A DNA stretch of 64,000 bases from Oculina patagonica (GCF_052425735.1 NC_135765.1:8928001-8992000); one strand, 5' to 3'; numbered from the stretch's first letter, positions 1-49,200 are shown. Numbers and translations: made by a program. The notes: generated from the sequence alone by a model not told the origin.

Positions 1-3000
1 ATCATTTGCTCGCAAGCCAAGTCCACGTTCGAACATTTATAATCCGGAAGGTTATAAATCAAATTAAGTCATTTAAGTTTACATAGAAAAGTGCCTCGAG
101 CAAAATAATAAACCGCACGTTACGACACGATCACGAACTCAACGTACGATGTTTGCAGAAAATAACTTTTTCCGTTTCTGAAAAGAAAAAGTCCCACACG
201 TTGAAGAAACGGAGAGAACCGAAAAAACAAAACAAAAGGCAGATTACGACAAAAACTCATTCAAAAAAAAAAAAAATTACTATAACTGAAAAAGTAGAAT
301 TAAGTTTGTACGTGTTCAGCTGTCCAGGGGAGAGCTGTTTGTGAATAAATTCTTGTTAGTTCCCGTTAACTTGAACTTGTGATTTCTCAAAACACCTAAA
401 GTCAACTTTTCAGCGATGAATCAAAACACGAAAACGGAACTTTCGGAACGAATTGCGTGGGTAAAAAGGACAACGGACTGGTTTGAAGAGGGTGGCAGAA
501 AAACTCGACTTCCTGGCCAGGATTATGGCTGATGCCTAGCATATGCCCATTCACGATTTAAAATACACAACCCCGGTTTTAGTTTTGGCATTGGTTGCGC
601 AACTTTTCCTACGCAGAGAATACATACCCACATTTAATCTATTTCTATGTTGTTTTTCGGCATTATCACTAGGCTGTGATATCAAATACCGACAAATCCT
701 CGCGCCGCGCTCTATGAGACCCGGCATCGCAGCCACACCCCCACCCCCTCAACCAACAAGTGATTATCAAAGGTCGTTTCATGTAATTTCGCTTGGAGTT
801 TGTATCTTATTTACGACTGTTTTTAGATTAATATGTATTACTTTCCTCTTCTTCTTTGGTGGGCTTTATTTAAGCGGTAGTGGGTAGACAGCGGAAAGCA
901 AAGGAAATCGGATATTGAAACTAGAAACGCCTGGCATGCGGCGGGTTTTCTATCATTTTGTTGCCTGCGTAGCTGGCGGTTCTGTTGGGGTTAACACGCG
1001 CGCGCGCGCGAGAGGGGCACAACTTGCGAGACACGCGCACCTTGCGATTGCGACTTGAAAGCGAGCTATAATTCTGACTTTCCTCTTAATCGCATACGCG
1101 TTATAAACACAGGTTTAGATATGATTTACCTGACCGCTTATCCCAAAAGCTTTATCGTACCGGATTTGTAAAGCCTTGTGGAAAGCGCACGAGGACAAAG
1201 ATAACATTGTTGATTGATTGATTGACAGACAGGAGTCACTTGTCTTGGAGCAAGCTCAAAACAAATATTGCAACATGTACCTACACGTTTAATTCTCGCG
1301 TTTTATAAGGTCTCCTGCAGAATGCAAACTAGCGGCACTGGGGAATGACTGTTATATTATCACAGCCTAAATTCTGTTTATACATCTGCTTTTTTTAATC
1401 ATAATTGCATGTAAATGCAAGTGCCGTTTAATTGGAAAAAGTATTGAACAAAACAAGCCTTTATTGAACTTCTTTAAGAATAAAAAAGTTCTTAGAGGCA
1501 TCGATTTCTCTGCAAACTGGAGCTTCGCCTTTGGAAGCCATTCGAAATAAAATTTCCGTGCATACATTTTTTTGCAATCTAGATTAAACCGATTTTCGCG
1601 ATAAACTTCTTAACGAGGATCGCAAGCAAAACATGATTAAAAAAACACCAAGGAAAGCTTTCAATTAGCCAAGTGTCGCTAAATCTGTCAACGATTTGCA
1701 TATGAATGAGGGCAGAGTTGTTTTTGTTGCATGCAAATCAAACGTTGCGGAGATCTAAACGATAGCAGCGTCCAAAAACAAACCTAAAATCAAACGCTTA
1801 TTCAGAAAGTAAGCTTGCAAAAACTTCCTTTGCAAAGATAGCTTATTTCCTGGCCATGAAATAAGTTATGGTCATTTCCAGCATGCAACGAAACACAAAA
1901 GAGGTCGCACGCGCCTTGAAGTTGTTTACCTCAACGTGCGATGTATGCAAAACTCTCTGCCCCAATGCGAAGGTCAGAAAGTACTGGTAATTACATAACA
2001 TAACTATAATTATCTCTAGCAGAAAAATACACTCGACCAGTGTTTGCAAACAGACTTGTTTTTTAACTCTGCGGATCTTGAGGTAACGATCAATTCCAAA
2101 ATAAAAAGTAGCAATTGGTCTGCTGCTAGTGCAAACAGCATGCGATGAGCGAAAATTGTACAAAAATGGTCAATTTACAGTGCTATATGTACAAAAGGCA
2201 TGTATGTGTTATTGATGTCAGCAGGGAACGGATATACGTATTTTTGATGTCGCAAGACCGAGAAAATGCCGACGGAGAGTAAAATACACCACACAAAACG
2301 AACGATTGCAATAAAATTTTTACATCGAGTTTGCCGGAAGAAAGAAAAATATTTCGCTTTCTTTATTGGCCCGGCCAAAGGTTCGAAATTTGCATACTGC
2401 TTGCCTTGACATTGCAATCTCACTTCCGGTAATTTATGAACTGTCAACTTGAAATAACGAACGCAAAATTTTTCAGAAGTTCTGTTTTTCTCGGCTCCCA
2501 AACCGCTACATAGATTCATATGAAAGCAGAATCACTTGCGGTTTACTTCGACTTCAGAAAAATATAAACAAAAGTTGAAAACATATCGAAAATCTAATTC
2601 TTTCCGCTCACGAAATTGCGCTCGATCGCAGCAACGCAGAACAACAATAAAGATAGAAATCGGTTATTCTTCTTTCCGAACGTTAGAATTGACAGACTGT
2701 TTAACTTTCGAGCGATAATACATTGAAGACAAAATATTACTTTGGCGTTGTTGATTCCAAGCACCGAATTTATTGGCTGGCTCGCCACATCCGGTAATTT
2801 CGCGGTCGCTTCCAAAAATTTTTTTTATCCCGTTCGCAACATGATAGCTTCGGCGAATTCGAATAATCTCAAAGAAATAGGATTTTATACTCGCGCAATT
2901 GGAATAAATGTACCTTAAGATTGAGGAATGGATCGCAAAATAGTTATCGATTGGGTCGTTTGGATAAATAAACCAAGAACCGGTGGCTTGATTCAAAAGC

Positions 3001-3114
3001 GCCGGGTTGACATTTCAAACGGAACAGGCGCTCTTGAAATCATGTTCAACAAGATAAGAGACTTCTGATGGCTTACATATAGACGCATATTGAAAGAAAT
3101 TCAAAATAAAATAC

Positions 3115-3319
3115 CTGTTTCTCCTTTGCTTTGCCTGAATTCTTCCAGCAGCGCCTTGTAGATAATGCCTGTGTTGTTCTGTATTCCCAGCACAACAAAT
3201 TGTGCTATAAAACCGGCAAGGCATATAAACCATCCCCAACCACCGTCCGGGACGGATCGGACCTGAATTTCCACCTGAACTTTCTCGATTTCTTTGCTTT
3301 CTTTACTATCCTTTCCCAT
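3115..3319 (-). CDS. First coding exon of an SLC16 monocarboxylate-transporter-like MFS protein; the rest of the gene lies left of the window
   Basis: MGKDSK...VPDGGWGWFICLAGFIAQFVVLGIQNNTGIIYKALLEEFRQSKGET contains the PDGGWGW SLC16 N-terminal signature. It ends at a phase-1 GT donor (ACAG|GTATTT at 3115/3114). A candidate acceptor TTTTCAG at 3365 suggests an upstream non-coding exon. No further exons recognised in 1-3114. Confidence 0.85.
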
Positions 3320-5275: not shown

Positions 5276-6231
5276 GGTCGCGGGGGATACCTACAGCATG
5301 AATAAATTCATGAAGCGAAATTTTGCTTGACCTGTATCTTTTAAAACGCTTATTTCTCGGCTGTTATGGGTGCGATTAAGCTCAAATTTTACAGAGAGAT
5401 AAAGAAATGATAAAATATTATGTATGTCTTCTTTTATGTGGTAGATTGTACTTAACGGCGATGTAATAGCCACGTTTGTGTCAAATTGGGAAGAACATGA
5501 TTTTGTGGCAGAGTTTGTAGAACCAGTACGAGACAGCACACTGTGATCTTGTCAAAAACTAATCAGTCAATACCTCTAGAGTGTCATAACAGAAGCGGAT
5601 TTTTTAATTTAAAATTTGCAAGCAAGTTATGGCGGTTTAAATGCGCAAGTTTTTATTTAATGCCTTCTACCTCTTTCTAAAAGCGCTCATTTAAAATTCC
5701 GCCTCTGTTATGACACTCTACAATATCCATAGTTTACCTATCTGCAGTGGCAAGTCATGAAGGTCTGTATCCGCGCTGTATTCTCTGCCACAAAATTGTC
5801 GGAAAAGTCCAAACTTTGAGATTTCCGAAGGTGTCCCGACCAAAACACGATCAGTTTCGAAAGGAGAGATGTAATTATGGTAATTATATTCCACGCTTTT
5901 ATGGTGAGAACAATGCGTTTTTTTATGAAGGACACGATTGTTTATGCCGAATATTATTGTGATTACTCTGAGTTGCAGAAACATTCAAATTTGAATAAAA
6001 ATCAGCTCATAGACTTCCTACAATCTATATAAACGTATAACGCCAAGTGTTGTTTTAAATTGGTTAATATCAAAGAACCAGGAATTTATTTCTTTTTAAA
6101 AATCACGCGCACGCACCCATATTTTTAACCAGTCATGAATATCTCGTAAAGTTGTCGATGTCCGTCGTTGCACTTCGTGCATACGCTTTAAATAAATGCA
6201 TAATGATGAGCCTAAGGTGTCCCCCGCGACC
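5276..6231. mobile_element. Non-autonomous Kolobok-type DNA transposon (956 bp)
   Basis: TIRs GGTCGCGGGGGATACCT / AGGTGTCCCCCGCGACC, flanked by TTAA on both sides (5272-5275, 6232-6235). GG..CC termini plus a TTAA target fit Kolobok rather than piggyBac. Confidence 0.75.
5577..5720. mobile_element. MITE with TAG..CTA ends nested inside the Kolobok-like element
   Basis: TIR TAGAGTGTCATAACAGAAGCGGA / TCCGCCTCTGTTATGACACTCTA; the flanking duplication is unclear. Confidence 0.7.
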
Positions 6232-7385
6232 TTAAACAATACTCAAATGGACTAACAATAACACTGTTATAGCTTTTCCTTTTAATATCCGCTTACACGT
6301 TTTTAGCTTGAAATAATTGTGCTGATCGCCAAAAAAGATATAAAAATTTATCAAATCTTGGCAATTCGACAACATTTGATACAAAAACACGCTTTTACAC
6401 GCGAAAAAACACACAACATAAAGCTGAACACACGGTGGCAATCGAATCGAACAAATTGAAATCAAACATTTAATTCATATATTTTTTTGTATCCGCTGCA
6501 TAAATCGTTTTAATTTCACACATCAACCACGCAACTACGTTTTCTCCAAACAGTCACGATACCGTTAACGGCTGTATAAAGCAAGAAAAAACCATTGCAT
6601 TTGGTGCGTTTGCTCCCCTTAGTCCTTTTCTGAACTGAGCCAGGTCAAAAAATTTGCGATATTTTGGTCGGGTATTTTGTGAAGGTGTCAACATGGTGCG
6701 AAAACGGTAAAACGGATGGGTCATTTAGAATCTGACGTCACATAATTTCCGTTCAAGTTCAGTTCTTTCTCTGAAATTGAAACTGAAACTCCGCTGTATC
6801 CGCTACAGCATATCTGCATTTCTTCAAATTAATTGATAAATTTGATCAAGGGTACCTCCAAGGTAATAGAGACCGCGAATAAATGACAAATAAATTTTCA
6901 TTTTTGTTTCTTTCCTCTTTTTTTTTAGATTCCCGTGCCAATAGCCTATGTAAAGCCGTACCTATCCCCGAGGAAATACCAGAGCGTTTTTCCTCGGGGG
7001 TGGGCACTTGTGTAAACACTGCTTTTCGCGCCTGTTTGCACGCAAAGCGAAGTCAACTTATCCTTTGTTCTCTTTTGATCGTTGGCAGTTTAATCAACAC
7101 CACTGAAATGAAGGTTGTTAATGAGCAAATTATTGGGTGAATTTCTCATCGTTGTCATATGTAATGAGACTAAACCTTTCGGTCACTGGAGGACTCATCT
7201 TGAAAACAAAAAGGCCAATTGTTTCATTATTAGCTATTACATTCCACGCCTGTTTGCACGCGTACGCAAACTAATTTTGGGCCACTGAGCGCGCGGTAGG
7301 TGGATGGAAAACTGCGGTTTATTTTTTGCGGAGTTATATTGCGAGTGCTGTATCAGAAAAACTGCGAACAATCCAAAGAGTAACG

Positions 7386-8720
7386 ATGGCCATTGTCGAC
7401 GAAAACTGGCAGACGAAGCGATCAACTATCAAAGAGAGAACCACGTTTATTTTCAACACGGAGACACTGAGCGCTGTGAAATTTGTTGTTCCACGGTCGA
7501 CTGATGAATGTGAGAGCAAAAAGTCTAAATTGGTGATCCAAGCTCACAAGTTTGTGCTTGCCATCAGCAGTCCTGTGTTCTTTGCCATGTTCTATGGTCC
7601 AATGGCGGAGACTTCAGACTCTATTGAACTGCCTGACTGTGAGTACGAGAGTCTGTTGGAGATGTTTCGTTATTTGTACAGCGACGAAGTGAAGCTGAGC
7701 GGAAATAATGTGATGCAAGTGCTGTACTTGGCGAACAAGTATATGGTGCCTTCTCTTGCTAAAAAATGTAACGAATATCTTCGAGAGAACTTAAAAACAT
7801 CCAATGTGTTTTGCATTCTCCCGTTCGCTCAGAAATTTGAAGATAAAAATTTGGAGGATCGATGCTGGGAAGTGATTGAGAAGCAGACAGAAGAAGCTGT
7901 GACGTCAGATGAATTTGTTACAGTTGAGCGATCACTAGTCGAGACAGTCGTGAAAAGAGCAGAAAGACTCGGAAGGTTGAACGTGAAGGAAGTAGAACTA
8001 TTCAAAGCTGTTGATCGCTGGGCCACAAAAGAAAGTGAAAGGCAAGGGATAACTCCTGATGGCCATGCGAAGAGACGAATTCTTGGAGAGGAGATCGTGA
8101 AAGCGATAAGGTTTCAAAGGATGTCACAGAAGGAGTTTGCGTCAGTTGTAATTGATTCTGACATTCTTACATCTAAGGAGGTTGGTGACATGATGAAACT
8201 TTTCAGTGATGTTTTAACATCTCCAATTGTACAAGCCCCAAGGGTAGTTGCTCTAACTGGTCATCGGGTTCAAAGATTTGGAACCTTTAAACCGCCATTA
8301 ACAAATCGGTTATGTGATGGTATGGCTGATTATATAAATTTTACTGTTAACAAACCCATCACGTTATATGGAGTTCAACATTTTGGTTCTGAAGGTGGCA
8401 AGTACAAGGTTTACACTGAAATTAAAGATACCACATGTACAGATATCTGTTCTCTGGTGATACAATTCGAATCATACACTTCAGAAAAGGACGAGACTTA
8501 TGATTATTACGGCTTTGATGTACGGTTTGATCGTCCAGTTTGTTTAGAGGAAGGCAAAGAGTACATGTTAATGGCGGTTATTATCGGTCCTAAGTCATGG
8601 TATGGAGAAGACGGACAAACATCTGTTGAGTGTCAAGGAGTACGATTTACATTCCGTTCTCATGTCCCTTTCAGAACCACTGAAACAAGAGGCCAGTTTC
8701 CTGCGTTTTTGTTAGCTTAA
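7386..8720 (+). CDS. BTB-BACK-PHR protein (BTBD3/BTBD6-like, putative CUL3 adaptor), copy C, intronless, 444 aa
   Basis: ATG 7386 aligns with the paralog starts (the track's TTG extension is unlikely). BTB motifs AHKFVLAISSPVFFAMFYG and VLYLANKYMVPSL; BACK motifs EVELFKAVDRWA and IRF; C-terminal PHR-like YINFTVNKPITLYGV..GQFPAFL. Confidence 0.9.
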   Translation: MAIVDENWQTKRSTIKERTTFIFNTETLSAVKFVVPRSTDECESKKSKLVIQAHKFVLAISSPVFFAMFYGPMAETSDSIELPDCEYESLLEMFRYLYSDEVKLSGNNVMQVLYLANKYMVPSLAKKCNEYLRENLKTSNVFCILPFAQKFEDKNLEDRCWEVIEKQTEEAVTSDEFVTVERSLVETVVKRAERLGRLNVKEVELFKAVDRWATKESERQGITPDGHAKRRILGEEIVKAIRFQRMSQKEFASVVIDSDILTSKEVGDMMKLFSDVLTSPIVQAPRVVALTGHRVQRFGTFKPPLTNRLCDGMADYINFTVNKPITLYGVQHFGSEGGKYKVYTEIKDTTCTDICSLVIQFESYTSEKDETYDYYGFDVRFDRPVCLEEGKEYMLMAVIIGPKSWYGEDGQTSVECQGVRFTFRSHVPFRTTETRGQFPAFLLA

Positions 8721-8723
8721 GCC

Positions 8724-8864
8724 TAGCCTGTTCCAGGCTCTCGGTTTGTGGGGAAGAGCGAAAAAGGCGTGCGACCGCGGAAAAGACTCCCGCTCGTTGT
8801 TTCCCTCGGTCGCTCGCACGCTTTTTTCGCTCTTCCCCACAAACCGAAAGCCTGGAACAGGCTA
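8724..8864. mobile_element. Hairpin MITE (TAGCCTG..CAGGCTA) inserted 3 bp after the BTB copy C stop codon
   Basis: Long TIRs TAGCCTGTTCCAGGCTCTCGGTTTGTGGGGAAGAGCGAAAAA. It is absent at the same position in copies A (38331) and B. Confidence 0.85.
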
Positions 8865-9252
8865 GCTCTTTTGTCAGTCTTAGCCCAGTCTAGTAGTTGT
8901 ACATATCGAGTTCTTTGCTAATCCGTTCTATGTTGAAGTACTCCTTAGTACATTATTTTTGTTTTGAGTGTCTTCGTGTCTCCGAAAAGAGGTCAACATT
9001 AATTACACTTCCGTAACTCGTAACATGTAAAGGCTTATGTATGCTACACCTTGAAAGACGATTGGTGCTTCTGAGATGCATCAAGCATCTCAGAAGCGTT
9101 TAGTGTATGGGAAGTAATAAAAGAATGCAGGCTAAATATACAATCTACTTGGTTTTGACTACTTGTTACTGGGATTTGACACTGTACCCCCCCCCCCCCC
9201 CCCCACCCCCTTCCGAATGGGATCTCATCCTTCCACCAGGTTGACGACTCAT

Positions 9253-10146
9253 CGTAGTTGTTCATTTAGCGCGGTGTCTCGTAAATGTCTGTTTTCGATT
9301 CGCAAGGCTTCAAGTTGCGCGTTCGTTACCTTCAAAGAACAATGAAATAAAACAGTTTTGGTGTGGAGAGCTACTTGGGCATATTCTAAGACAATCATAA
9401 TCAACCCTGTTATTCCGTTCACCCACTCTTCTCAAGGAAGATGCACTCATGTACCTACTTTATGTTGCAACACGCGCGCACCTCACGCGTGTATCCACAC
9501 GCACGCACGCGCCACACGCGTGTATCCACGCGCACGCACGCACGCACATAGACACTAACATTTCCAATGCTTACCTGAAGTTCAGCAGCTGCGCGCTCTG
9601 TCATGCTTTGCGCTTGCTTCACGAAGGTCTTTTTCCATGCGTTGAGTTCTCTCAGTGATGGATGCAATTGCAACGTCCCTATCATCAAATGAAATAAGAT
9701 CAAAATAAGAAAAAAAAAGAAGAGAAAACTTGCCACAACAAAAATAAGCCTTCATAGGCGCGCAAGAGAAGGAAAGGAAAGGAAAGGCAAAATGAAATAA
9801 AATAAAAAAGAAATAAAACGAAAAGAAACAAAAAGGAAAACAAAAGAGTTATAAGATAAGTAAGTGGAAAAAAGCTCAAAAGACCAGTTGTTTATCAGTG
9901 AAAAGAACATTCTCGTCTATAGAGCCGCCTGTCTCTCTTAGCTGGCGATTGGCTAGATGTAACAAAGGGAATTTTAAAGTTAGCAAAGCAACCGAAGGTA
10001 ACAAACAAACAAACGAACAATGCACATCCAAATGCAAAATCACCTTTTATGAAGTTCAGCAGTCATGTTACCAATCTGTTTCTTCATACCGTCCACTTCA
10101 GCCTGATGTCCATCCTTAACAGTTGAGACCCTTGCTATTTTTTGAG
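9253..10146 (-). pseudogene. CEP63: CEP63 pseudo-exons 17-19, unit C
   Basis: Exon 17 (10044-10146) is +5 nt with an early TAG; exon 18 (9575-9678) has a +4-nt frameshift; the exon 19 (9253-9329) donor has changed GT to AT; exons 20-24 are deleted. Confidence 0.85.
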
Positions 10147-10512
10147 CTGTAGATTCAAACGCACTATCACAAGTTCCATAAACTACCGACATTTCTGAAG
10201 AATTCAAACCACGAGTTTAGTTGGTTTATTCAGCAACCGAGAAGCATCACTCCAATTAAGTTCGTCCAGAATTAAAGGAGCTTGCGGCACTGGCCAAATG
10301 CCGGAGTAACCTGATTAAAAATTCGAGATTCGACTGTCTTATCAAAAGACATGACAGACGCTTATACCATTTACGTTGCCAACAACAACCGAATGGTTGT
10401 CCTCAAAGAAGACTGGGAACAGGAGAAACGTACAAATGGTAAAGAAATTTTCGGTGAGACTAAACCTTGTGAGCCTTGATGTGACAATTCAAAAGAAAGT
10501 TGTTGGTGAGTA

Positions 10513-10918
10513 CAGTCAACTCTCGTTATGGCGGAAACGCTCGGGACGCCGTTGAGTGTACGTAATAGCGAGAGTCCGTAATAGTGGGGTGTGAAAAAAA
10601 AAGTGCTGTTAACATGAGTTAAATATAATATAGACTATGACGAGCACATCAGCAGTGGTGAAGCTGCTAAGCAGTCGATAGTAATTACTACGTAATTAAG
10701 TTACATGAGAAAGTTACTGTGTCCGCTTCATCGAGAGTCAAAACACTAAATTTGTTATTTTGGTACCACGAAAGTGTACGTAATTCCGCAATAGCGAGAG
10801 TCCGTAATAACGGCAGTCATTTCCAGTCAAACTTCTATAGCTTTCTCCGAGATCTGGATTTTGTCCGTTATAGCGAGCGTCCGTAAAAGCGGGCTGTCCG
10901 CAAGGCGAGAGTTGACTG
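10513..10918. mobile_element. Tc1/mariner-type MITE (CAGTCAACTCTCG..CGAGAGTTGACTG, TA flanks)
   Basis: TIRs and TA dinucleotides at 10511-10512 and 10919-10920. A paralogous copy at 30586-31546 shows that it predates the duplication. Confidence 0.8.
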
Positions 10919-11793
10919 TATTTTGCCAGGAGCTGGTACAAAAGAAAAACGAGGCACGGTATTTCATATCAAGGCGTTCGCAAAGCGATGGGGCGGGGTT
11001 AAACTTGTCACATTTCTCAATACACCTATCCTACTGTCTAGAAGTTTTGAAGATTAGACGACCGCAATCCAATGACAAAACAAAAAGCTGTAAACAATCA
11101 TTCTTTATTCTCACTTTACATTATAGCTAGAGGCAGTTTGTTTTTTCTCCACCTCAAGAAAACTTCACAAATATCTACCAATACACTGTAAGCGATTTCA
11201 ACCTCGTTGTCACAGTATACGCCGGGTCACTCCGAAATTCATAAACTTGCGTACAAAGATCTTAATTTGCTCATTAAATTAAAATCGAATACAGTCTTCG
11301 TATTGAACTATACAGTACTGATATTTAAAGTTAAAAAGTAACAAAAAACGTAATTGTAATAAATAAGTTTACAAATAGCCTGAAAACTAGTATATGCTGC
11401 AACATATTGCTTTGTAGATACAAGATAATTTCGTTAGTGTTGCAAAAGTAACAGAAAATATTGTTCTTATTAGTTGAGTAGAGAGAATACGGGATGAAAG
11501 TGACCTACCTAGTAACGAAAAAGCCCAGAATCGAATAATAATTAAGTTAATTTAGATTTTTTCACAAATAGTGCTACCTGTGAGTAATAATTTAGAAATA
11601 AATTATGGCCACTCCTGGGTAATCTTGTAGTGGACTGTCTCAATGAAGCCTATGAGTGTGGTGAACTTTCAACTTCTCAGAAAATGGCCATAATTAAATT
11701 GATAGAAAAGAAGGGAAAAGATAAAATGTATATTAAAAACTGGAGGCCGATCTCGCTCCTAAATGTGGATGTCAAGATTGCATCCAAAGCTAT

Positions 11794-36100: not shown

Positions 36101-39100
36101 CTTCTAACGTTGTAAGTTTCTCGCGAAGAGTTGCTACCTCACTTCGCAAATTTCTGTTATCATCCTGAAATGGCACAATCAGGCCATGGAATGCAAGAAG
36201 ACAAGTTGTTGTCTCGTGTATTTTTTTTTCAAAACGTCCATTTAAAGTAGCTAGGATAGCATATTGTTTCTTACATTCACAAATGATAAAATCCTTATAA
36301 GCAAAGGCTTAATGTCATCAAGAAGTGCAAGAATAAGTTTGATTGTTTAGTGCATGAAATGCTACTAATCAGAGAATTGTCACCATCTCTAAATGTCCAA
36401 TCAGACTCAATCAGAGCCAAACTATTTGCGTGACATTGCATATTTTATTATGTTAATCTTAAGCGAACTTTTTCTGACAGTTTATTCTTTACATTTTTTG
36501 TGAACTTGATAATGAAAATGAAAAACAAAAAAATAAAAATTACCTCAAGTTGACCGATGAGCTGCAGATTACCACTGTAAAGGTCTGATAAATCCTTTAA
36601 AAAAACAACATAATTTAGGGTTAGTGTCTCTCAGCTAGTACGAATGGTCGCTTGTGTACTGTATTTCAAACAGAAACACCCCTATTATTTATTTAATTTA
36701 TTTATTTTCGAACTCAGTCAAGCACTGGGCAGCACGATTCAGTGTTAGGGGCACGGGCTTTCAGCAGCAAGAAATTATTTTTTCAAAAATCACAGCAGGA
36801 GACACGCAAGACGTATCCATTCAACGAAGCACACCATTTAACTCAGACAAATAGTCACGCAGTTGTGTGACAGGTTTTAAGCCCGCGCCCGCAAGCAATT
36901 TGCTCACTCAGCGGTAACTATTTCCTTGTTTCGTTTTTGCTTAGGGGACGGATAAAAAACTGAGCTGCATCGAAACATTTGTTGTATCAGAAAAACTGCA
37001 AACAAGCCAACGAGAAATGATGGCATTTGTCGAAGACAACTGGCAGACGAAGCGATCAACCATCAAAGAGAGAACCTCATTCATTTTCAACACGGAGATA
37101 CTGAGCGATGTGAAATTTGTTGTTCCAGTGTCGACTGGCGAAAGCGAAAGTAAGAAGGTGATCCCAGCTCACAAGTTTATGCTTGCCATAAGCAGTCCTG
37201 TGTTCTTTGCCATGTTTTATGGTCAAATGGCGGAGACTAAAGACTCTATTGAACTGCCTGACTGTGAGTACGAGAGTCTGTTGGAATTGTTTCGTTATTT
37301 GTACAGCGACGAAGTAAAGTTGAACGGAAGTAATGTGATGCAAGTGCTGTACTTGGCGAACAAGTATATGGTGCCGTCTCTTCGTATAAAATGTAACGAA
37401 TATCTTCGAGACAACTTGAAAACATCAAATGTGTTTTGCATTCTCCCGTTCGCTCAAAAATTTGAAGATAAAGATTTGGAGGATCGATGCTGGGAAGTGA
37501 TTGAGAAGCAGACAGAAGAAGCTGTGACGTCAGATGAATTTGTTACAGTTGAGCGATCACTAGTCGAGACAGTCGTGAAAAGAGAAAGGCTGAACGTGAA
37601 GGAAGTAGAGCTATTCAAAGCCGTTGATAGCTGGGTCACAAAAGAAAGTGAAAGGCAAGGGATAACTCCTGATGGCGTTGCAAAGAGACGAATTCTTGGT
37701 GAAGAAATCGTGAAAGCGATAAGGTTTCCATTGATGTCACAGAAGGAGTTTGCCTCAGTCGTAATTGATTCTGACATTCTTACTTCAAAAGAGGTTGGTG
37801 ACATGGTGAAACTTTTCAATGATGTTTTAACATCTCCACTGCCATTTGAACAAGCCCCAAGATTAGTAGCTCTAACTGTTAAACGGGTTCAAAGATTTGG
37901 AACCTTTAAACCGCCATCAGTCGACTGGGGATACGGTGGTTTTGATGATTATATAAATTTTTCTGTCAACAAGCCTATTATGTTACATGGAGTTCAGCAT
38001 TTTGGTTCTGAAGGTGGCAAGTACGTCGTTTCCACACAGATTACAGATGCTAGAGATAACTCATCTTTCGTGTTTCAATCAGGATCATACGCTTCAGAAA
38101 AGGACGAGACGTTTGGCTATTTCGGCTATGATGTACGGTTTGACCCTCCAGTTCGTTTGGAGAAAGATAAAGAGTACTTGTTATTGTCGTTTATTACCGG
38201 TCCTGTGTCATGGTATGGAGAAGATGGACAAACATCTGTTGAGTGTCAAGGAGTACGATTCACCTTCCGCACTTTTTACGGTAGAACCACTGAAACAAGA
38301 GGCCAGTTTCCTGCTTTTTTGCTAGCTTAAGTCCTCTTTTGTCAGTCTTAGCCCAGTCTACTGGTTGTACATATCGAGTTCTATCCTCATCAGTTCTAGT
38401 TAAGTTCCTTAGTACATTATTCTTGTTTTGTGGGTCTTCGTGTCTCCGAAAATAGGTCAACATTAATTACACTTCCGTGACCTGTTACATGTAAAAGCTT
38501 ATGTATGTTATACCGAAAGTGTATCGAATACCCGTTAAAGATGACTGGGATAATAAGAACTAGTGTATAGTAAAAGCATAAAGCATCTCAGTAGCATTTA
38601 GTGTATAGGAAACAATAAAAGAATGCATGCTAAATATATACTCTTCTTGGTTTTGACTACTTGCTTCTTAGTGTTCACGCTTGGATTTGACGCTGTACAC
38701 CCTCCCTCCGTATGGGATCTAGTTTATCCAGAAGGTGGACAATCAAAGCACAGACTCACCGTTAATTGTTCATTTAGAGCGGTGTCTCGTAAATGTCTGT
38801 TTTCAATTCGCAATGCCTCAAGTTGCGCGTTCGTTACCTGAAAAGATGAAAAGAATAATGAAATAAATCAATTTTAGCTCGTTTACAAACAACAAACCCA
38901 ACTGAACACGCAAAAGTACCCTAGCCTGCTATGCATGGCACAATCCTATCCTCGCCAGATTACACTCAACTGAAGAGCTCAGTTTGAGCCACTAGGGTAT
39001 AGTTATTCATAATCAACCCTGTTTTTCTTTCACTTACTCTTCTCGAGAGAGATTGCACAGATATACTAGTACCAGAACCAACACGCGCGCACTTCACGCG

Positions 39101-42100
39101 TGTATCCAGGCACGTACGCACGCGCACGCAGACACGTACATTTGCAAGGCTTACCTGAAGTTCGGCAGCTGCTCTGTCATGCTTTGCGTTTGCTTCACGA
39201 AGGTCTTTTTCCATGCGTTGAGTTCGCTCAGTGATGGATGCCATTGCAGCGTCCCTATTGTAAATGAAAGAAGGTCAAAGATCGAAAAAACTAAATAAAT
39301 AAACTTTGTCAAGAAAGACAAGAAAATAAAATAATAAAGTTAATCGGCAATAAGTGGAACTCTTCTAAGGGCTATGACTGCGGATCCCAAGGTAAACAAG
39401 CAAACAAACAAACAATGCACATCCAAATGCAAAATCACCTTTTATGAAGTTCAGCAGTCATGTTAGCAATCTGTTCCTTCATACCGTCCACCTCAGCCTG
39501 ATGCCCATCCTCTCCGGTTGAAATCCTCTCTTTAAGCTGTAGGTTCAAAGTATTATTAAAGTTTTAAAAAATAACCGACACTTCTTTAACTCTTTAATAC
39601 TAAGATTTTATCCGTCATCGATCGTCTCACCAAAAGAAATGACGCTTATACCATTTACGTCATCAACAACGACCTCATGGTTGTCCTCGAAGAAGAAAAT
39701 TATTGGCGTTCCGTTCTAACCAGAGAAGTAGGAGTACCTCTGAAGGAACGCCATAATGTTCTTCAAAGTTTCGAACCATTTCGAACACGTTCCCAGGGCC
39801 TCTACCGCCCGGTCCAAATTACCAAGGAAAAAACCCTGGGGGTACTAGGTTAGGTGGGTACTGGTGTGCACCCTAGCTCATGCTATTTGAGGAATCTCTG
39901 GACTAATCGTTATTTTAGAAAAGTGGAGTTTTCTAACCTTTGAATTTTCCAGCATCAGTTGTTTGAGGTCATTGTCTTCTATGAACTTCACTTCCTCCTG
40001 CTAAAAGTTCAAAAGTAAAGCATCACTTACAAACAAATATAATAAACAGTGTCAAAACCACTGCCTGGTCAGATAAAAAGGGCAAAATGCATGGGAAAAA
40101 ATGTCTTGTGCAAAACACATAAATTACAATAACTTACCTTTCTGCACAGCTCTGCCTGTAGCTTAGAGAGTTCATTTTTACTATTTTCCAGTCTGTTGAA
40201 AGGGAAAGAAATAGTGCAACGAAGTTTAGATTCATTTAGACAAGCACAAAGCAAGATTTCAGAGCTTTTGTAAATGATCTTACTTTTGATTCAGATGGTT
40301 CAGTTCATTCTTTTGATATTGACTGGTGTCTAGCTGCGACCTGCGTGAAAACGATATCTTTTAAAATACTGACAATGATTTTAAACTCGCTGATACGGGT
40401 AACGGTGTAAGAATTTGAACAGGAAAGGTAAAGGAACTACAAGCGTAGACAAAAGTAGTTGGAACGCTTACCTTTTGAAAAGCCGAAAGAAATGCAAATA
40501 CTTCACGCTTAAACAGATTAAACTGTCACATTCAATATTTTTAGAGGGCCCACTCCCCCTTTCAATGTTGAGCTATTCAAGGAATTTCTGTGCAATATAT
40601 TGGGGGGGGGGGGGGGGTCAATGTTTGAGATCGGGAGGGAGAGAAAAGGAAAAAAATTGGTAATCGTGACAACAATTTTGAGGAGGGTTATATGTTTTTT
40701 CTGATGTATAATAAAATTGCTTTCAAATTGAAGGAAACCTCAAAATAATAGTTTTCCAACGCAGAAAAACACCAAAGGAGTAAAAATAAATGGAAAATAA
40801 ACAAGGATGTTTAAGACGGAGGGAGATTATGTCGGATTACAAATGACAAACTTGAAAAAGTTGGGCAATTTTTTTAAGATACGCCGTCTGTGACGCTAGG
40901 TTGGTTTCCACTGACGTGTAATTTTAGGTGCGTTTACAGGTGTTTTTTTTTTAAAAAAGCGACTCACTGTATTTCCATTCGGCTCGTCCTGAGATCTTCT
41001 TTTAACCTCCTTACTTCAATATTTTCTGTTCGTCTACTAACGTCTTCCAATTGCCTGAAAATAAGCCAAAAAACGTTGATTATAACAAACAATGTTTTCC
41101 AATTTTATTTTCAAGTAAAAAAAAAAAAAAGAAATAGCCCTAAACAGAAAGTTTGACTGCGATTTCTTAGATGTTTTTCTCAAAAGCAGCCAGAAACATA
41201 GTCTCCTCCGCAGCCGTTGTTTGGGCTCGTCACGCAACGCTTCTCTCGAGGGAGCGTTGCGTGACGATCCAAGTAACGGCTGCGAAGAAGACTACCAGAA
41301 ACACTACTGACAAAACAAACAACAACAACAAAGACAAATTAAAGAGGCCTCGATTCTCTGTCGTACCTGATAACCTCGTCCTTCATTATCAAACTGTGTT
41401 CCAGTTTAGACATGTCTTCTGAATGCTGTCTTTGGTCATCTTCTGCTGCCTGCAGTCAACAGAAATAAGCTCGCTGTAGCATAGATGTTTTTTATCTACT
41501 GTCGCTCTTAAAAGCCTGTAGTTGAAGAATGTACAGGGCTCAAAAGACAAATGAGACGGCGCGAGGTACCATTCGATGGTGTCTTTTCATTCCGACATCT
41601 TTCTCTGCTTTTGCTACCTGAAGATACTTTACTTTGCTACTTTACGGTATACTGTATGTCGAAATTTCCAAAGACGATGAATGAACATTATATATATTTT
41701 GTATGCGGTACACTGCATGTGGTTTAGGAACGCAATTCTTGTGTTCACCCACTCAAGTCGGTTTTTGTCGAAGGTTATGCCAACTAGTCCCAAGTGCACG
41801 GGGATTCTTTTATTAAGAAAAACAACCAACCAAAGAAACAAACACGAGAAAGTAAAATAAATTAAAATACAATACCCTAATAAGATCGTCTCTGGCTTGA
41901 AGTTCTAGCTGCAGATGACCATTATCTTCCTCAAGACGCTGAAAAAAATAATGAAAAATAAGACCGACTTACTGTAAAGAGACATTTTGCTTTGCGTAAT
42001 ATTTTGCTAGGAAAAAGGACGGGTAGGCGAGGAAGGGGTAAAGGGGACATGACAAAGCACCCCCCTCTCCTTTGTCCAGTGCCCCCCCTTTCATCTCCCC

Positions 42101-43197
42101 CCCCCCCCAAATTTCTTCACGATTTCCCAGATTCCTGGCCTATGTATAGCAGTACCCACCTTCCCATTTTACCTCGGGGAGGTGGGTACGTCTATACGTA
42201 GGCTACCAGATCTCCATACCCTTACTTTGCCGAGATTTTTAATGTGTTTTAAAAGCAAGGTGGGTTGAGTTTGTTGTTGTTTCTCGTCGTTGCTGCGACG
42301 GTTTTCTTCGGGTTCTGCGGTTTTCCTTCCTCCACAAAAAACAACACTTCCAAATTTTAATTCGATTGGGAATCCGAGGGCGACAAGTTTGTAAGTTGCA
42401 ATACTATTATGTGCTACCCTCGTAAAATAAAGACAACTTTTTTTTACTTAAATTTGAATGTGTAAAATCTCCCACCCCCTTTCCTGGGCCACTCGTTCGC
42501 TCTGTTCAGATTTTCCTCAACCTCCAGATCAAATCATCACATACCTGTAGAGAAGACCGAGTCTTTCTGAGTTCATCTTGTAGCTTGGCAAAGTCAGTAG
42601 CTTGTTCTCTGTTGGATGCAAGAGCTTCCTCTAAAGAACTCTTCAACCTAACAAGCACATAACAATTGTTACCAATATCAACAGGGATGCCATGCAAAAC
42701 CTCTATGATTTGTGTTACAGAACCGTTGGTCTCCGAAGGAACATCGAAATTTTGCTGTACTATTAAACGCGATGGCCGTAATAATGAGCACAGATTTTTT
42801 TGCAATCATTGTGCTCGCCTTGTTTTGTAAGGAAAGACAATCTCCTCTGTCATATTGATTAAAAGAATAATAAAAAACCTCGGAAAATTCTCGATAAAGA
42901 AAAAACAAAGAGTTGTAAAAACGATAAGTAAAAGCTGATCAGAAGAATTGTTATCTTACTGTTGGACGGTGTCTTCAGTTCCATCACATTCATCCTTTGC
43001 ACGTCCAAGCTGAAATTATGCAAAATATGTTCAATCATTCGTCACATGAATCAGGTTAGGCCTGCGTAGATTTACAGAAATACTCTTGAAAGAGGACAGC
43101 AAAGGCAGATTATTTCATACATGCTTAGTCCCTTTTTCTACTGTTTTTTTTCCCTCTTTTCTTGTGGGAGGGGCCGCACGCGCGCGCGCGCGCGTGC

Positions 43198-43252
<55 letters not shown>

Positions 43253-46200
43253 AGGGGTGTATGGCATTACTTCAACGTGCTTAGGGATAGGATGAGTCGA
43301 TAGAAAAACGAATAAATTATGTAAAAAGGGTGAGTCAAAACGTACATGTATCGCGTGTACGGATGATTAGTTGAATAATTTTTAACCTTATTCAAAATTA
43401 AGAAAGCTTATGGTGAGTGGAATGTTGCACTGTAAGATGATTTTAGGACGAGCGAACGACCGAGCTAGCGCTGATTCAATAGGAAAAGAGAGAGGAGGGT
43501 TGGGGCGTTTCAGAGTGGAAAAACGGACAAGGGAGTGGGAGTTAGGCTGGAAGAAAGAGCCCCCATTCCCAAGCGCTCGCCCACCAAATACGCCTGCACT
43601 GCAGTTTGGGCGACCCGATCCATAGGGACAGGGTTTGTTACTGATTTGTCAAAAATGCAACTTTCACATACCTGAGAATGTAATGCTGCCATCTCCTGCT
43701 GATGATCACGTTCAAGGTCTTCCATCATCTGCCTCCTCTTGTTTAGCTGTGCTTGGTATCCTAGCAACTGTTGCTAAGAGATAAAATTTTCATGATACAT
43801 TAAAAGGGTGACAGAAAAAGTTGCTTTAAATTAGGGCACAGTCAAATGATTAGTACATCTGTACGTAATCATGTAAAGTATACCTGTTGCAGGTTAAAAT
43901 TGGTTTTTAGGCTAAATCCAATTCCGACCTATATTAATCTCTTTCAACCTGTAATCAAAGATAACAACTATTGGACTTCCTTCTTGTGAATTCAAGTTAT
44001 TTTAGGTCATTGTAAAAGTGTATCTTCTTGTTGAAGCAGATCAATTTTGGTCGGAAATGGATTTCACCTGAAAACCAATTTAATTTGCAACATACCCAAC
44101 TGTAGTGCATAAAATCACATGGCCAATAGCTATGTAATACCTGCATCAAATCACTCTTTTCAATTAATGCTTTCTTTTGACTCTCCAGCCCTCGGATGCG
44201 GTCATCCCGTGCTTTCCTTCCTCCTTCCCAATCCAACGTTTTGGCTTTATATTCCTATAGTACATGACAAAGAGGCATGAATCGAAACAAAGGTTTAGTG
44301 GAGAAACATTTTAATTCCCCTTACTGTTTCACAGTTGTTCCACATATTTCTTCCTCTTTCTTTGGAAGAATCAGTACAGTTTAAATCAAACCTTCAGAAA
44401 CTAAAGGAACAGACCTGAACATCTGCATTTAGAAGGTACAGCTTGGTAGAACTTTATTGATTATTAATGAAGATGAGTTTTCAACAATGTCACGAGCATG
44501 GGACAAAGAAAAATTCTGAGTCTCCGACGGGAATCGAACCCATGGCCTCCCAGGTGTTCCTTTTTGTGGATTCGAGGTTTGATTGTTTTACTTTTGCTTG
44601 AAACACTACAGATAGTGTACAGTAGGAATAAGGGTCCAGTGGACTAGAGGTACATTAAGGGAGGTACATTACAAGCCCTACCCAGAGATCTTTCTGTTTT
44701 GTTCTTAGGCAAGACACGCTACTCTTACCATGCTTCTCTTTAAACAGAAGTGTATGGGAACGAGAGAAACTGACAATAAAATCACTTCTTGCTACAGACA
44801 ATAGAGTTTTGCACAAGCACAAACTTTAAGTGGTGTTACACTAACATCTAAACTTGTAATCATTTTAGCCCTGAAAGTGGGCAGTCTCTAATTTCTGCGA
44901 TGTGAGATTAAAGGAACTGACTATTTAATGAATGTATCTCAAGGACATGGTGAAATGGACAGGGAGTTATGATGTTGGATCAATGTCGGGACCATGGCAG
45001 TACTTCATTCATACCTCTAATCTATCTTTCAGTTTATCCACTTCTGAATCTCTAGATTTTAGATCAGCCAAAAGCTAAAATAAAAAGAGAACAACATTGT
45101 TAATGCCACAAATAATTATTACACATTTATGTACATAACCACAACCAGATTTTCAAGCAAAACTGTGAGAAAAGGAAGCAGGACACTGCAACTTGAATCT
45201 ATGATTGGTTGATGGGTGGAGCCATAAACAAATTACCTTATTATAGGAAATTAACGCTTGTGTTTATTAAGGTATTTGAAATTAACGCGACTTAAATTAA
45301 CACGAATTGAAGGAAAAATTACTTCCCAATAAAGGAAATTAACGCGAAAGAGGGGGTAACATTTCAAAATTAAGGAAATTAACGCGACAAACACAAAGGA
45401 AAAAAAACTTGTTAAGACAACAGGAACAAGTTTACTTTAACACAAAGGAAACTGAGCGCCTCGAGCGTTTTTCACAGTTTTAGTGATCCGGCAGATTTCC
45501 ACGCTGATGAAATAATGTCTTTTCATAAGTGTCAAGACGTCTGGCGTGTATCGAGAAATTGGTTCCAAAATAATGGAAATTAAGGTCATGGAAATTAGCG
45601 CTCCACTTAATTAACGGCGCGGAAATTAACGTTAACAAAAATTAATGCGACTTAAATTAACACGAATTTTCGAAATTCGCGTTAATTTCATGAAGCGTTA
45701 ATTTCCTATAATAAGGTATGGCGTGCACAAGTTAATTAAATTATCCTAGAACTCCTTGTGCTGAAGTACATACACTGAGTCTTCACACAGTTTCTGGATT
45801 GGTGAACACTCAAATTACAGTGTACATAGTTCCATTTTAGTTTGAGCAACAGCAGTATTGAAAACATTTTCAGGTTCTTATTTCTCCAATGAGAGGCTTG
45901 TACACACACTTGCAAGTAGTTTTAAATATCACACAAGCACTCTGTTCTCAGAGAAGGAGCTTCACAAAAAAAAAAAACTCTCTAATCTTGCTGTCATTTG
46001 GGATCTTGGCAACCTACCTGGTCTCTCTCCTTTTCTATGTGTGCTGTTTGCTTGTTGCTCTTTTTCTGGAGTTTTTCATGTTCATATTTCAGATTGTCAA
46101 CCTAGAAAATAATTGTTATGCACAATTGCAACAGAGATCAGTAGAGCAAAGAAAACTTAAAATGAAGCGAAAACATCAAAGTAAAGCATGAATGATAATA

Positions 46201-49200
46201 AGCAATAAAAATCTCGATGATTTGGTAACTGCAGAATGCAATATGGAACAATTGAAAGTATGATGTTTTATATATGTTCATGTTTATTTGCTTTATTTTA
46301 CTTTCGGAAAAACTGTTCACAGGCTACTTGTATTCTTTCCCAGGTGTTCCTTACGCTAATCTTTGCAAACGTATCACGACACTTTTGTTCGTTTGTAACA
46401 AAATACTTTTGTCTTCCTTGAAAATGCGATAACATGAAACTTTTGTTTTTTGTTTTTTTTACGGCGGCATCGATGACATTTGTTTAATTTAATTAAGTTA
46501 CGGTTTAGACTGCACGAAAGACGATTCTCAAAAACTAAAGAAACAAATCTAATCAAAAAACATATTTTTCGACAGGTTTTTTAAAAAGCAGTACAGCTAG
46601 GATATTTGTTTCCTGGTTATCAGGTGTTCACGCCGAAAATCCCGGTGCAAGTTTTTGCATACCTAATTACGAAAGCGATGTGAAAGTCTCAAAATCTAAA
46701 TGATTTAATTAATTTGCGGTTTTTACTTGGCGCCAAGAAGTCTGCAGGAAGCCTACCGCAAACACGCAATACAAGCGATGTTCATGATAGTTCCAGAAAA
46801 CAACGTAGACTAATCTGCGCATGCGTTTGGTGTAAATTACGTTGAGTAGTACCACAAGGAGAGCAAAGGGTTTTCTGAAACAAATATATACGTTTGAGAT
46901 CTTCATATGAAAGTAACGTAGATGTGCTCCAGGTTTTACCTAGGGGTACGGTCAGGTGCTCCCCACCCCCACCCCCTTCACAAGAAATAATTAATTAATT
47001 GATATTAATTAATTAATTGACTATTAAAGTTTACACCATAGCGCTTTAGGGGTTTAGCGGACGACAGCCCCAACAAACCATCACAATAGTGCATTCTGCA
47101 CTAAAAACCATCACAATAGTGCATTCTGCACTAAAAAATGACGTTTGGATGTCATCTTGACATCTCAATAAGGATGTCAAGATGACATTTAAACATCGTT
47201 TTTAGCACTTATTTCCATTTTGAAATGTATTACAAATTGTTTGCTCATTAAAACATGAATGTCTGTATGCATCACCTCTTCCTTAAGATGCATCACATGC
47301 TCCTCATACTCTGTAACAATGTCTCTTTGGCTCATCTCCATCTCGTCCACTTTCTGTTGAAGACTGCCAACCTGTTGAAGGTCAGAAGTAATGTTGCATT
47401 ATGGTGATGTTTGTCACATCTTTAAAACCTTTCACCTCACAATATGCCTTATGCATGATAACGTCATAAAATTATGCCTAAAATTCATCACCAAGCTTCG
47501 TTCACGCGTATTATTCTCAAACCCGTCACCTTCATACAGTTTTCAAGTGGGTATTCTTTTCATCTTTGCTGCTTTGGGAATTCATTCAATCATGATGAAA
47601 TTTACAAGTTTGCACTTTGAAAGCAAGGCTTAGTGTTGAAACTAGCCTGACATAAACATGCATAAGGGCTATTTACACTGTACACTCTTCATTCACCACC
47701 ATTTTGAAAAGTCATTATGACATCTCATTACTTCGTTGAATTACAGTAGTTGGTCCTTCTTGCTGTCAATAGCCTGATTCTCGAATTGTCAGATGTCACA
47801 AAGGAGACAAGGGAGTGAGAGCAAGTGACCTCTGGACGTCTGAGAATCAGGTTATGGTTACAGTTGCCGAAGTGAGCACACTAGGCCATTGAGAAAGAAT
47901 CTCTGGCAAGTTTGATTGTGCCAATTTTATCAGTGGTCGATACTGTAGCATGCACAGTCAACCCATCCCTTTATGAACACCTCTATATTATGGACAGTTA
48001 CTTGGCCACAAGGTAACCAGACTTTATACACTCAGACACCTCCACCTAAAAAACCTAGACTAATGTGGATTAAACAACAGTGAAACCTTAAACCCTACAT
48101 GTATGTACATGTACTGTATATGTAATACTATGTACTTTGTTGAATCAAAATAATGTCTTAAGATCACCTCTTGAAAATTCCAACCCAGGAAACAACATCA
48201 AACAAGGTCCTTATTGAGATGTAACTCATTCTATATCAACATTTACACATACAATATTCTACAAATGAATGCAATTCTGTAGACTGAGTTTTCTTTTTCA
48301 AAAAGGTCACTAAAAACCTCATATTCAAGCCATTGAATATGAGGTTCTACACCTAATAAATTGCAATAACGTTGTCATAGAAAAAAGGAAAAAGAAAAAG
48401 GTAATTAGGAATTAATTAGCGTAGTTTTGTAATTGGTAGCATTTACAGAAAATTCATGAGTTTTTATCTGCACACTTTAAGTCCACTTTTTTATGCTGTA
48501 ACCATATTTAAATTGATTTATTCATATTTTAAGGCTTTTTGAGGCCATTTGTATGAATAAATTTCATGCATGCGCTTAATTAATTCCTATTTGACTTTTT
48601 CCTTTTCCTTTTTTCTATGACAACCTTATTGCAATTAGGTGTACCTATAAGGTAGTAATAAGTAGAATGTAATATTGTTAATTTTAGTACCATATTGTCT
48701 TTGAAAAGCCTCCATGGGGAAAGATAATAAAGGATGTATGTATGTATGTAAGTCATAAAAGAATTTTGGACCAATTTTGACCCTTGAATTCAAAGTTAAT
48801 GGACTGTATCCCTAACTAAAGGCAGTTTCATTAACACAATGTCCATTACATTGTATAGCTACAGTACGAACCTCCTGGCTCTTCTGTTCCAGTTGAACTC
48901 TGACAAATTCCAGTTCCTTGGTTTTCTTGTCCAGTTGTATCTGAACAGCATGTATGTGATTTTCCCATTCTGCTTTCTTGGCCGTCACCATCAGGTCAAT
49001 CTGCCGCATCAGCTGAAAACATTAAAAAATATGTTGTGTAACATTTATGTGATAATCACCTTGTACAGCAAAAATTGCATACCAGTAATTTTCAATTTCC
49101 TTTGATTTTTTTAAACAATCATTTGTTTCAAAATTTGTACAAACAATCATATTGATCAGTGATCAAAAGGATTTATTTATTATTATCTACTGTAGTTGTT

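Follow-up and report, generated by a model that had tools for sequence, protein, structure and literature searches.

The CEP63 locus, its repeat units and their reading frames

We analysed a stretch of 64,000 nucleotides from the genome of the stony coral Oculina patagonica (GCF_052425735.1, NC_135765.1:8928001-8992000, on chromosome CM126642.1; hereafter the window, with positions counted from its first letter). The window contains the centriole gene CEP63, an intronless gene with BTB, BACK and PHR domains (hereafter the BTB gene) nested antisense in one of the CEP63 introns, and, beyond the 3' end of CEP63, two further BTB genes lying among copies of CEP63 exons. The arrangement very probably reflects a genuine tandem segmental duplication, located downstream of a CEP63 gene that is itself intact. 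Selection on the open reading frame (ORF) is well supported for all three BTB copies, and the presence of lesioned host exons beside three open BTB ORFs is far beyond chance.

The minus strand of the window carries an annotated CEP63 product of 729 amino acids, with a range that ends at 33168 and a match to the Pfam CEP63 N-terminal domain (PF17045). Exons were mapped with a coral CEP63 of 724 amino acids (P0139), which had been returned by an exon-translation search of the representative library. Alignment of this protein to the window by tblastn gave 23 collinear exon matches, covering residues 8-724 in order from 50643 to 33168. The exon with the first few residues was not found, and the coding-exon numbers used here are lower by one than those of an earlier, sequence-only reading of the same DNA. 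The last ten exons were refined to their splice sites (exon 14, 40192-40138; exon 15, 40000-39938; exon 16, 39536-39439; exon 17, 39254-39155; exon 18, 38837-38760; exon 19, 36594-36544; exon 20, 36164-36022; exon 21, 35032-34872; exon 22, 34156-33993; and exon 23, stop included, 33323-33168; all on the minus strand), and their spliced translation is continuous. Annotation, Pfam, tblastn and spliced translation together identify the coding exons of a functional CEP63 at 33168-50643.

The BTB gene designated copy C (37017-38330, plus strand, 437 amino acids) is intronless and lies antisense to CEP63 between exons 18 and 19, as the sequence-only reading had noticed; it is predicted by ORF, Pfam and annotation, and its 5' flank overlaps exon 19 on the opposite strand. 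Copy B (25534-26841, plus strand, 435 amino acids) and copy A (7386-8720, plus strand, 444 amino acids), both identified by ORF and Pfam, lie downstream of the CEP63 3' end among non-functional exon copies, and copy C alone is contained whole within one host intron. All three copies are included in the NCBI protein set of this genome. Copies A, B and C each match BTB (PF00651; E = 4e-21 to 1.5e-23), then BACK (PF07707; E = 6e-8 to 2e-12, above the Pfam cut-off) and a C-terminal PHR domain (PF08005; E = 1.5e-17 to 4e-20, above the Pfam threshold), the PHR profile being matched in copy B only to position 133 of 151, after C-terminal changes. The nearest solved structures were the BTB domain of human BTBD6 (2VKP, E = 5e-26) and the PHR domain of BTBD2 (3NO8, E = 5e-7). 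The BTB-BACK part was also matched to the BTB-BACK regions of KLHL, KEAP1 and SPOP, and an AlphaFold2 model of the PHR part is all-beta, with a predicted local distance difference test (pLDDT) score above 90.

A stretch of approximately 60-100 bp located 5' of the start codon is conserved in all copies, including those of a distant O. patagonica cluster at 5.19 Mb (locus L005), and contains the motif GCTGTATCAGAAAAACTGCGAACAA..CCAA.GAG. It lies at 36950-37016 in copy C, at 25436-25533 in copy B and at 7275-7385 in copy A, where it is the sole upstream sequence retained, and it is probably a 5' untranslated region or core promoter.

Self-BLAST of the window revealed the repeat at E = 0, with collinear matches running across exons, introns and flanks and the copies arranged head to tail; the shared non-coding flanks and identifiable junctions are those of a tandem segmental duplication. 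The sequence-only reading had described a unit of ~10 kb, reaching from mid-exon to past the 3' end and present three times, and this description fits the first two units. Unit I (30195-40161, ~10.0 kb; self-BLAST and junction alignment) contains the functional CEP63 sequence 3' of mid-exon 14, together with copy C, the 3' flank and a distal segment that we call X. Unit II (10455-30208; self-BLAST) is a full copy of ~11.1 kb without its transposon insert, and is 75-92% identical to unit I, segment by segment. Unit III (6666-10454) is only 3.8 kb in length and retains copies of exons 16-18, copy A with a short 5' flank, a remnant of segment e, and segment X; exons 14-15 and 19-23 are missing, and so is the BTB 5' flank except for ~40-110 bp. 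The transposon is a nested insertion of 8.6 kb (11600-20232) found in unit II only and absent from unit I by self-BLAST. It contains an intact ORF of 1489 amino acids (12304-16773, minus strand; no Pfam hit) inside a long interspersed nuclear element (LINE), the reverse-transcriptase ORF of which (17904-20039, plus strand) matches RVT_1.

The distal end of the first duplication is marked by segment X (30195-30468), which recurs at 6666-6990 beside unique downstream DNA, the arrangement to be expected at the distal limit of a tandem duplication. At the junction between units I and II (~30208), segment X is joined to the last 24 nt of exon 14, with which unit II begins; the mid-exon breakpoint proposed earlier is thus borne out. 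The junction between units II and III (10454/10455) carries the motif TGAGACTAAACCTT at 10455-10469, also found at 7165-7179 and corresponding to 30526-30540 in unit I, and this motif is the left end of a second duplication, not a target-site duplication. Units II and III share a +5 insertion in their copies of exon 16, and are sisters in a tree of the non-coding exon 16-18 region (100/99 support). The first duplication extended from mid-exon 14 to segment X past the 3' end and carried the intronic antisense BTB gene along. Judging from the junctions, the second would have taken place inside the lower unit, from the motif TGAGACTAAACCTT to the position equivalent to 29933. A deletion of ~6.4 kb in the lowest unit would then have taken most of segments e, d and c, so that copy A was left there with its 3' flank and no more than ~100 bp on its 5' side.

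The copied CEP63 exons, all on the minus strand, were aligned exon by exon with the functional ones. Unit II contains, at 28770-30208, copies of the last 24 nt of exon 14 and of exons 15-18, and at 21134-25078 copies of exons 19-23. Here exon 15' is decayed, with several indels, exon 16' has the +5, exon 17' an in-frame TAG, exon 18' a -1 and exon 23' a +4 near its end; exons 19', 20' and 22' are intact, and exon 21' has an in-frame +6 insertion ahead of a retained G/GT donor. Unit III holds copies of exons 16-18 at 9246-10173, in which exon 16'' has the +5 common to unit II, exon 17'' a +4, and exon 18'' both a -1 and a donor changed from GT to AT. The +5, +4, -1 and +4 frameshifts and the in-frame TAG reported from the sequence alone were all recovered in these alignments; of the two donors reported lost, that of exon 18'' is indeed destroyed, whereas that of exon 21' is kept after the in-frame +6. 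These partial copies of CEP63 are without promoter and 5' exons and have been accumulating frameshifts and a stop. In unit II, exons 19'-23' splice into an uninterrupted ORF that runs as far as the +4 shift, and the genome annotation places a 5'-partial gene of 236 amino acids over them and a gene of 81 amino acids over exons 16''-17''. On the branch of exons 19'-23', non-synonymous changes are fewer than expected from mutation alone; these exons are either recently dead, exchanged with the functional copy, or perhaps still used.

The reading frames of the BTB copies differ sharply from those of the exons copied with them. Nine independent disabling events were counted in 1314 nt of copied exons, against one terminal shift in 3957 nt of BTB ORF (P = 3e-5). 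Between copies A and C, six of six indels are multiples of three, where 27% would be expected (P = 3.6e-4) from a non-coding control of 5.0 kb aligned between units, in which 16 of 60 indels were multiples of three. Between copies B and C the count is four of six, the exceptions, of 1 and 11 nt, being located at the 3' end; copy B has an in-frame deletion of eight codons, and six codons short of the ancestral stop its frame is shifted by +1. The earlier observations that three BTB ORFs of ~1.3 kb stay open (444, 435 and 437 amino acids), and that their indels are in frame save one shift in the last codons of copy B, were therefore both reproduced. Using the local indel-to-substitution ratio and a 4.4% chance of a stop per substitution, we estimated the probability that a neutral 1.3-kb ORF would stay open at 2e-3 to 2e-7. 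In a related coral, described below, the BTB copies were open in five of five cases. On this evidence, each BTB copy is a complete gene held open by selection on its frame.

Substitution rates, related corals and the surroundings of the array

Pairwise ratios of non-synonymous to synonymous substitution rates (dN/dS, or omega) were 0.41-0.72 for the whole BTB ORF, 0.30-0.41 for BTB-BACK and 0.58-0.69 for PHR (up to 1.8 in the related coral). On the terminal branches omega was 0.38, 0.58 and 0.78 for copies C, B and A, respectively, rising to 0.48, 0.70 and 0.96 when corrected with a mutation spectrum taken from local non-coding alignments. The same counting was applied to the branches of the copied CEP63 exons, on which changes were polarised with the functional exons of the related coral; it gave 0.25-0.49 uncorrected and ~0.37 corrected (P = 0.0005), with 25 synonymous and 26 non-synonymous changes where a non-synonymous fraction of 0.73-0.74 was expected. 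Because the copied exons themselves give ~0.37, dN/dS is unable to show selection on the BTB copies here, and it was set aside as a test of selection. The claim that selection maintained the BTB copies is accordingly upheld by the reading frames (nine lesions against one shift), and not by dN/dS. The sequence-only reading had also taken the copied exons as a neutral control of the same age. They do not serve as one. Divergence along the unit is uneven, with K running from 0.08-0.10 in some stretches of segments d and e up to 0.31 for units I and II over the exon 16-18 region, and the proportions of change in the exons are not those set by mutation alone.

In the assembly of a related coral (ENA ERZ25067872), we found functional CEP63 exons 13-23 with a BTB gene in the same intron, followed by no fewer than four additional units, all of which contain a BTB gene and exon copies. 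One dispersed unit lies on another contig, still with copies of exons 14 and 18. No BTB gene lies within a more distant CEP63 locus (GCA_927797965.1). In three trees, built from the BTB coding, non-coding exon 16-18 and exon 19-23 regions, the units group by species, which points to unequal crossing-over or conversion. Such exchange would explain the grouping by species, the patchy divergence and the purifying signature on disabled exons. The patchy divergence, the selected look of the copied exons and the difference in copy number between the species favour continuing exchange among units, and the array would keep changing by unequal crossing-over and gene conversion. For gene conversion within the BTB ORFs only nine shared derived sites were available, and these do not settle the three-way relation of the copies: the protein tree pairs copies A and C, and units II and III (copies B and A) are placed together by the non-coding DNA and the shared +5.

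The array may be older than the split between O. patagonica and the related coral and have been homogenised since by concerted evolution, a possibility that we place a little short of even; the alternative is independent amplification in each lineage. The first-duplication junctions of the two corals lie within ~50-70 bp of each other on both sides, the purifying signature of the copied exons fits exchange with the functional unit, and divergence is patchy along the unit, all of which would suit an old array. However, the junctions are not identical, that of O. patagonica falling inside exon 14 and that of the related coral 15 nt ahead of its acceptor; the trees of all three segments unite the units of each species with 100% support; and the +5 of exon 16 is absent from the related coral's units. 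More tentatively, the cassette formed by the CEP63 3' part and the BTB gene might be a dynamic array of robust corals, in which selection would act for more, and more varied, substrate adaptors (see below) and unequal crossing-over would repeatedly swap segments between 'dead' units and the working 3' half of an essential centriole gene. A dynamic array of this kind would explain the omega of ~0.37, the grouping by species and the occurrence of two array sizes with nearly coincident junctions. Such a cassette would also be able to seed new loci, for which the second contig of the related coral is an example.

Several other features accompany the arrays. Within that of the related coral, a block at L003:1-6046 (ctg20523, 65617-71660) has dense prokaryote-style ORFs, including a packaging ATPase of the Pox_A32 type and a collagen-repeat protein, and looks like an integrated virus-like or Polinton-like element. 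In the O. patagonica window, the next gene downstream (1-3319, minus strand) is a major-facilitator transporter annotated with 525 amino acids (MFS_1), and its first coding exon (3101-3319) resembles the N-terminus of a monocarboxylate transporter. The sequence at 6000-6301 has very high word depth (~95-850) in three sequencing runs of RNA type, with loose ends on both sides, and probably represents either a dispersed repeat or part of an abundant transcript. A 4.2-kb satellite (55865-60061), upstream of the first coding exon identified for CEP63, is built from the 10-nt motif CATTCACCTT with higher-order periods of 40 and 110 nt, is ~85% regular, and has a plus strand nearly free of G (GC skew -0.97).

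Alternative accounts of the BTB copies

Copy A, and perhaps copy B, could be a young unprocessed pseudogene that is still open by chance, so that only copy C would be functional. The adjusted omega of copy A (0.96 overall, 1.03 in BTB-BACK), its lack of shared 5' flank beyond ~100 bp, the frameshifted C-terminus of copy B and the thin evidence of expression are all compatible with this account. We nevertheless consider it unlikely, given that every indel between copies A and C preserves the frame, that no stop has arisen despite ~60-110 substitutions, and that the joint probability of neutral survival is 2e-3 or less. Transcription bears on the same question. Of the 31-mers sampled from copy A, a fraction of 0.14-0.29 was present in probable RNA runs, and of those sampled from copy B, 0.42-0.53; the runs with copy A and copy B words came from several studies and bore several organism labels. 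When unitigs of three RNA-type runs were placed on 6000-10500, they covered 7510-8980, with none at 6302-7509 and almost none beyond 9020. On the variable PHR part, unitig pieces of 126-236 nt had one to three differences from copy A (98-99% identical). The presence of copy-specific unitigs beside flanks with zero cover argues for copy-specific RNA and not DNA carry-over.

A number of points weigh against our reading of the locus as a tandem duplication with three selected BTB genes that encode adaptors. The order of events (duplication, duplication, deletion) is deduced from the junctions and was not observed. Values of omega do not separate the BTB copies (0.96, 0.70 and 0.48 for A, B and C) from the copied exons (0.37); copy A cannot be told from neutral by its substitutions, and little of its upstream flank is left. 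The RNA evidence is thin, consisting of short assembled unitigs from runs whose types were guessed; the first 125 nt of the copy A ORF have no unitig cover, and a run of poly(A) raw reads gave two reads on copy A. CUL3 binding of the coral proteins is predicted from homology.

Copy A could also have arrived by a separate insertion, through retroposition or a staggered cut, as a 3.3-kb insert (7180-10454) with TGAGACTAAACCTT on both sides. A motif of 14-15 nt does stand at both ends and is single in unit I, the BTB gene is intronless, and paralogues elsewhere share the gene body only. We regard such an insertion as improbable: neither a poly(A) tract nor terminal inverted repeats were found, the insert contains copies of CEP63 introns and exons, and homology with the related coral's flank extends beyond the left motif, from 7180 to ~7290, which means that the motif belongs to the duplicated segment. 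Alignment of that flank ruled out the motif as a target-site duplication, and copy A shows neither the poly(A) nor the target-site duplication of a retrocopy or LINE-mediated insertion.

The sequence-only reading had further proposed that the CEP63 intron was a cradle; in the strong form of this idea, the coral BTB-BACK-PHR family originated there and spread to other loci. This proposal is largely refuted, and we hold it to be very improbable. The unit on the related coral's other contig, which keeps its copies of exons 14 and 18, indicates that the cassette has moved at least once, and the 5.19-Mb O. patagonica cluster is only slightly more distant than the related coral's copies. The family, however, is far larger than the locus: among 8000 candidates scored, a search yielded 3420 homologues at E<=1e-10, and more than 100 family proteins, mostly from coral assemblies and spread over many corals, have at least 69% identity. 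O. patagonica itself has at least 16 close paralogues on four chromosomes (counted in the top 120 hits plus one further cluster member), which NCBI names BTBD6-like. The nearest other cluster, L005, lies 3.7 Mb away with a unit of 5.5 kb; the part similar to the window is confined to the stretch between 63 nt 5' of the start codon and the stop, so that the cluster shares the gene alone, and no CEP63 remnants were found in it. A tree of 119 family members places the CEP63-linked copies with the L005 cluster in one shallow, unresolved twig, and the more distant CEP63 locus, as noted, is without a BTB gene. The array is an ordinary local expansion in a family that is expanding this way across the genome, and the locus is one small branch of that family, not its source. 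A search of the literature on coral BTBD6 or BTB-BACK-PHR expansion and on nested-gene amplification returned nothing relevant. Finally, the notion that the repeat is an assembly artefact, with haplotypes or collapsed reads set side by side, is hardly credible, as the units are 8-31% different, far above allelic divergence, and are built differently (one has the 8.6-kb transposon, another the 6.4-kb deletion), copy-specific A and B words occur in runs from several studies and organism labels, and an independently assembled related coral has the same kind of array.

Variability, predicted function and comparison with known systems

Among 80 family members, the sites that are variable by site entropy are concentrated at residues 283-314, 380-392 and 418-428 of copy C, which in the AlphaFold model (pLDDT above 90) are loops of the PHR domain and one strand face. 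The BTB-BACK half stays conserved, and the PHR loops and one exposed strand vary. Btbd6 has been described as a Cul3 adaptor of this domain architecture (bioRxiv 10.1101/575910), and the BTB-BACK-PHR architecture has been described (PMC1257465). By homology to vertebrate BTBD6, the coral proteins are most likely CUL3 substrate adaptors, with the PHR side expected to set the target.

The coral copies have the same three-domain order as vertebrate BTBD6, BTBD3, BTBD1 and BTBD2, and structures from this group (2VKP and 3NO8) were their best matches. By contrast with vertebrate BTBD1/2/3/6, the coral genes are intronless, very many per genome and arranged in tandem arrays, and they have hypervariable PHR loops, whereas vertebrates have only a handful of conserved BTBD genes. 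Nematode and plant MATH-BTB and F-box genes represent lineage-specific adaptor expansions, in which a conserved ligase-binding half is joined to a fast-evolving substrate-binding half. The coral family resembles them in its many tandem paralogues, its constrained BTB-BACK half and its faster recognition domain, and differs from them in that this domain is PHR and not MATH or F-box-associated.

The genes of the L005 cluster belong to the same family as the window copies and are likewise intronless and tandem, with variable PHR loops (74-84% identical). In the window, however, what is repeated is part of a host gene, which leaves the copies tagged with CEP63 exons and introns, whereas the 5.5-kb unit of L005 is untagged. 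Partial gene duplication that leaves unprocessed pseudogene fragments beside a complete passenger gene is an ordinary outcome of segmental duplication. The window conforms to this in that the CEP63 copy is without promoter and 5' exons and has acquired frameshifts, a stop and a donor loss, while the nested gene persists. It departs from it in that the copied CEP63 exons are not simply neutral (omega ~0.37) and that exons 19'-23' retain a spliced ORF, which suggests continuing exchange with the functional unit.

The locus carries a warning on method, in that the co-duplicated pseudo-exons of a tandem array are not automatically a neutral yardstick, and the oddly selected look of the copied CEP63 exons is the one point worth following. 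It also provides a worked example of an intronic passenger gene multiplied by partial duplication of its host, in which the host fragments tag the history of the copies. Collectively, these observations add evidence for a very large, tandemly expanding BTB-BACK-PHR family with variable PHR loops in stony corals.

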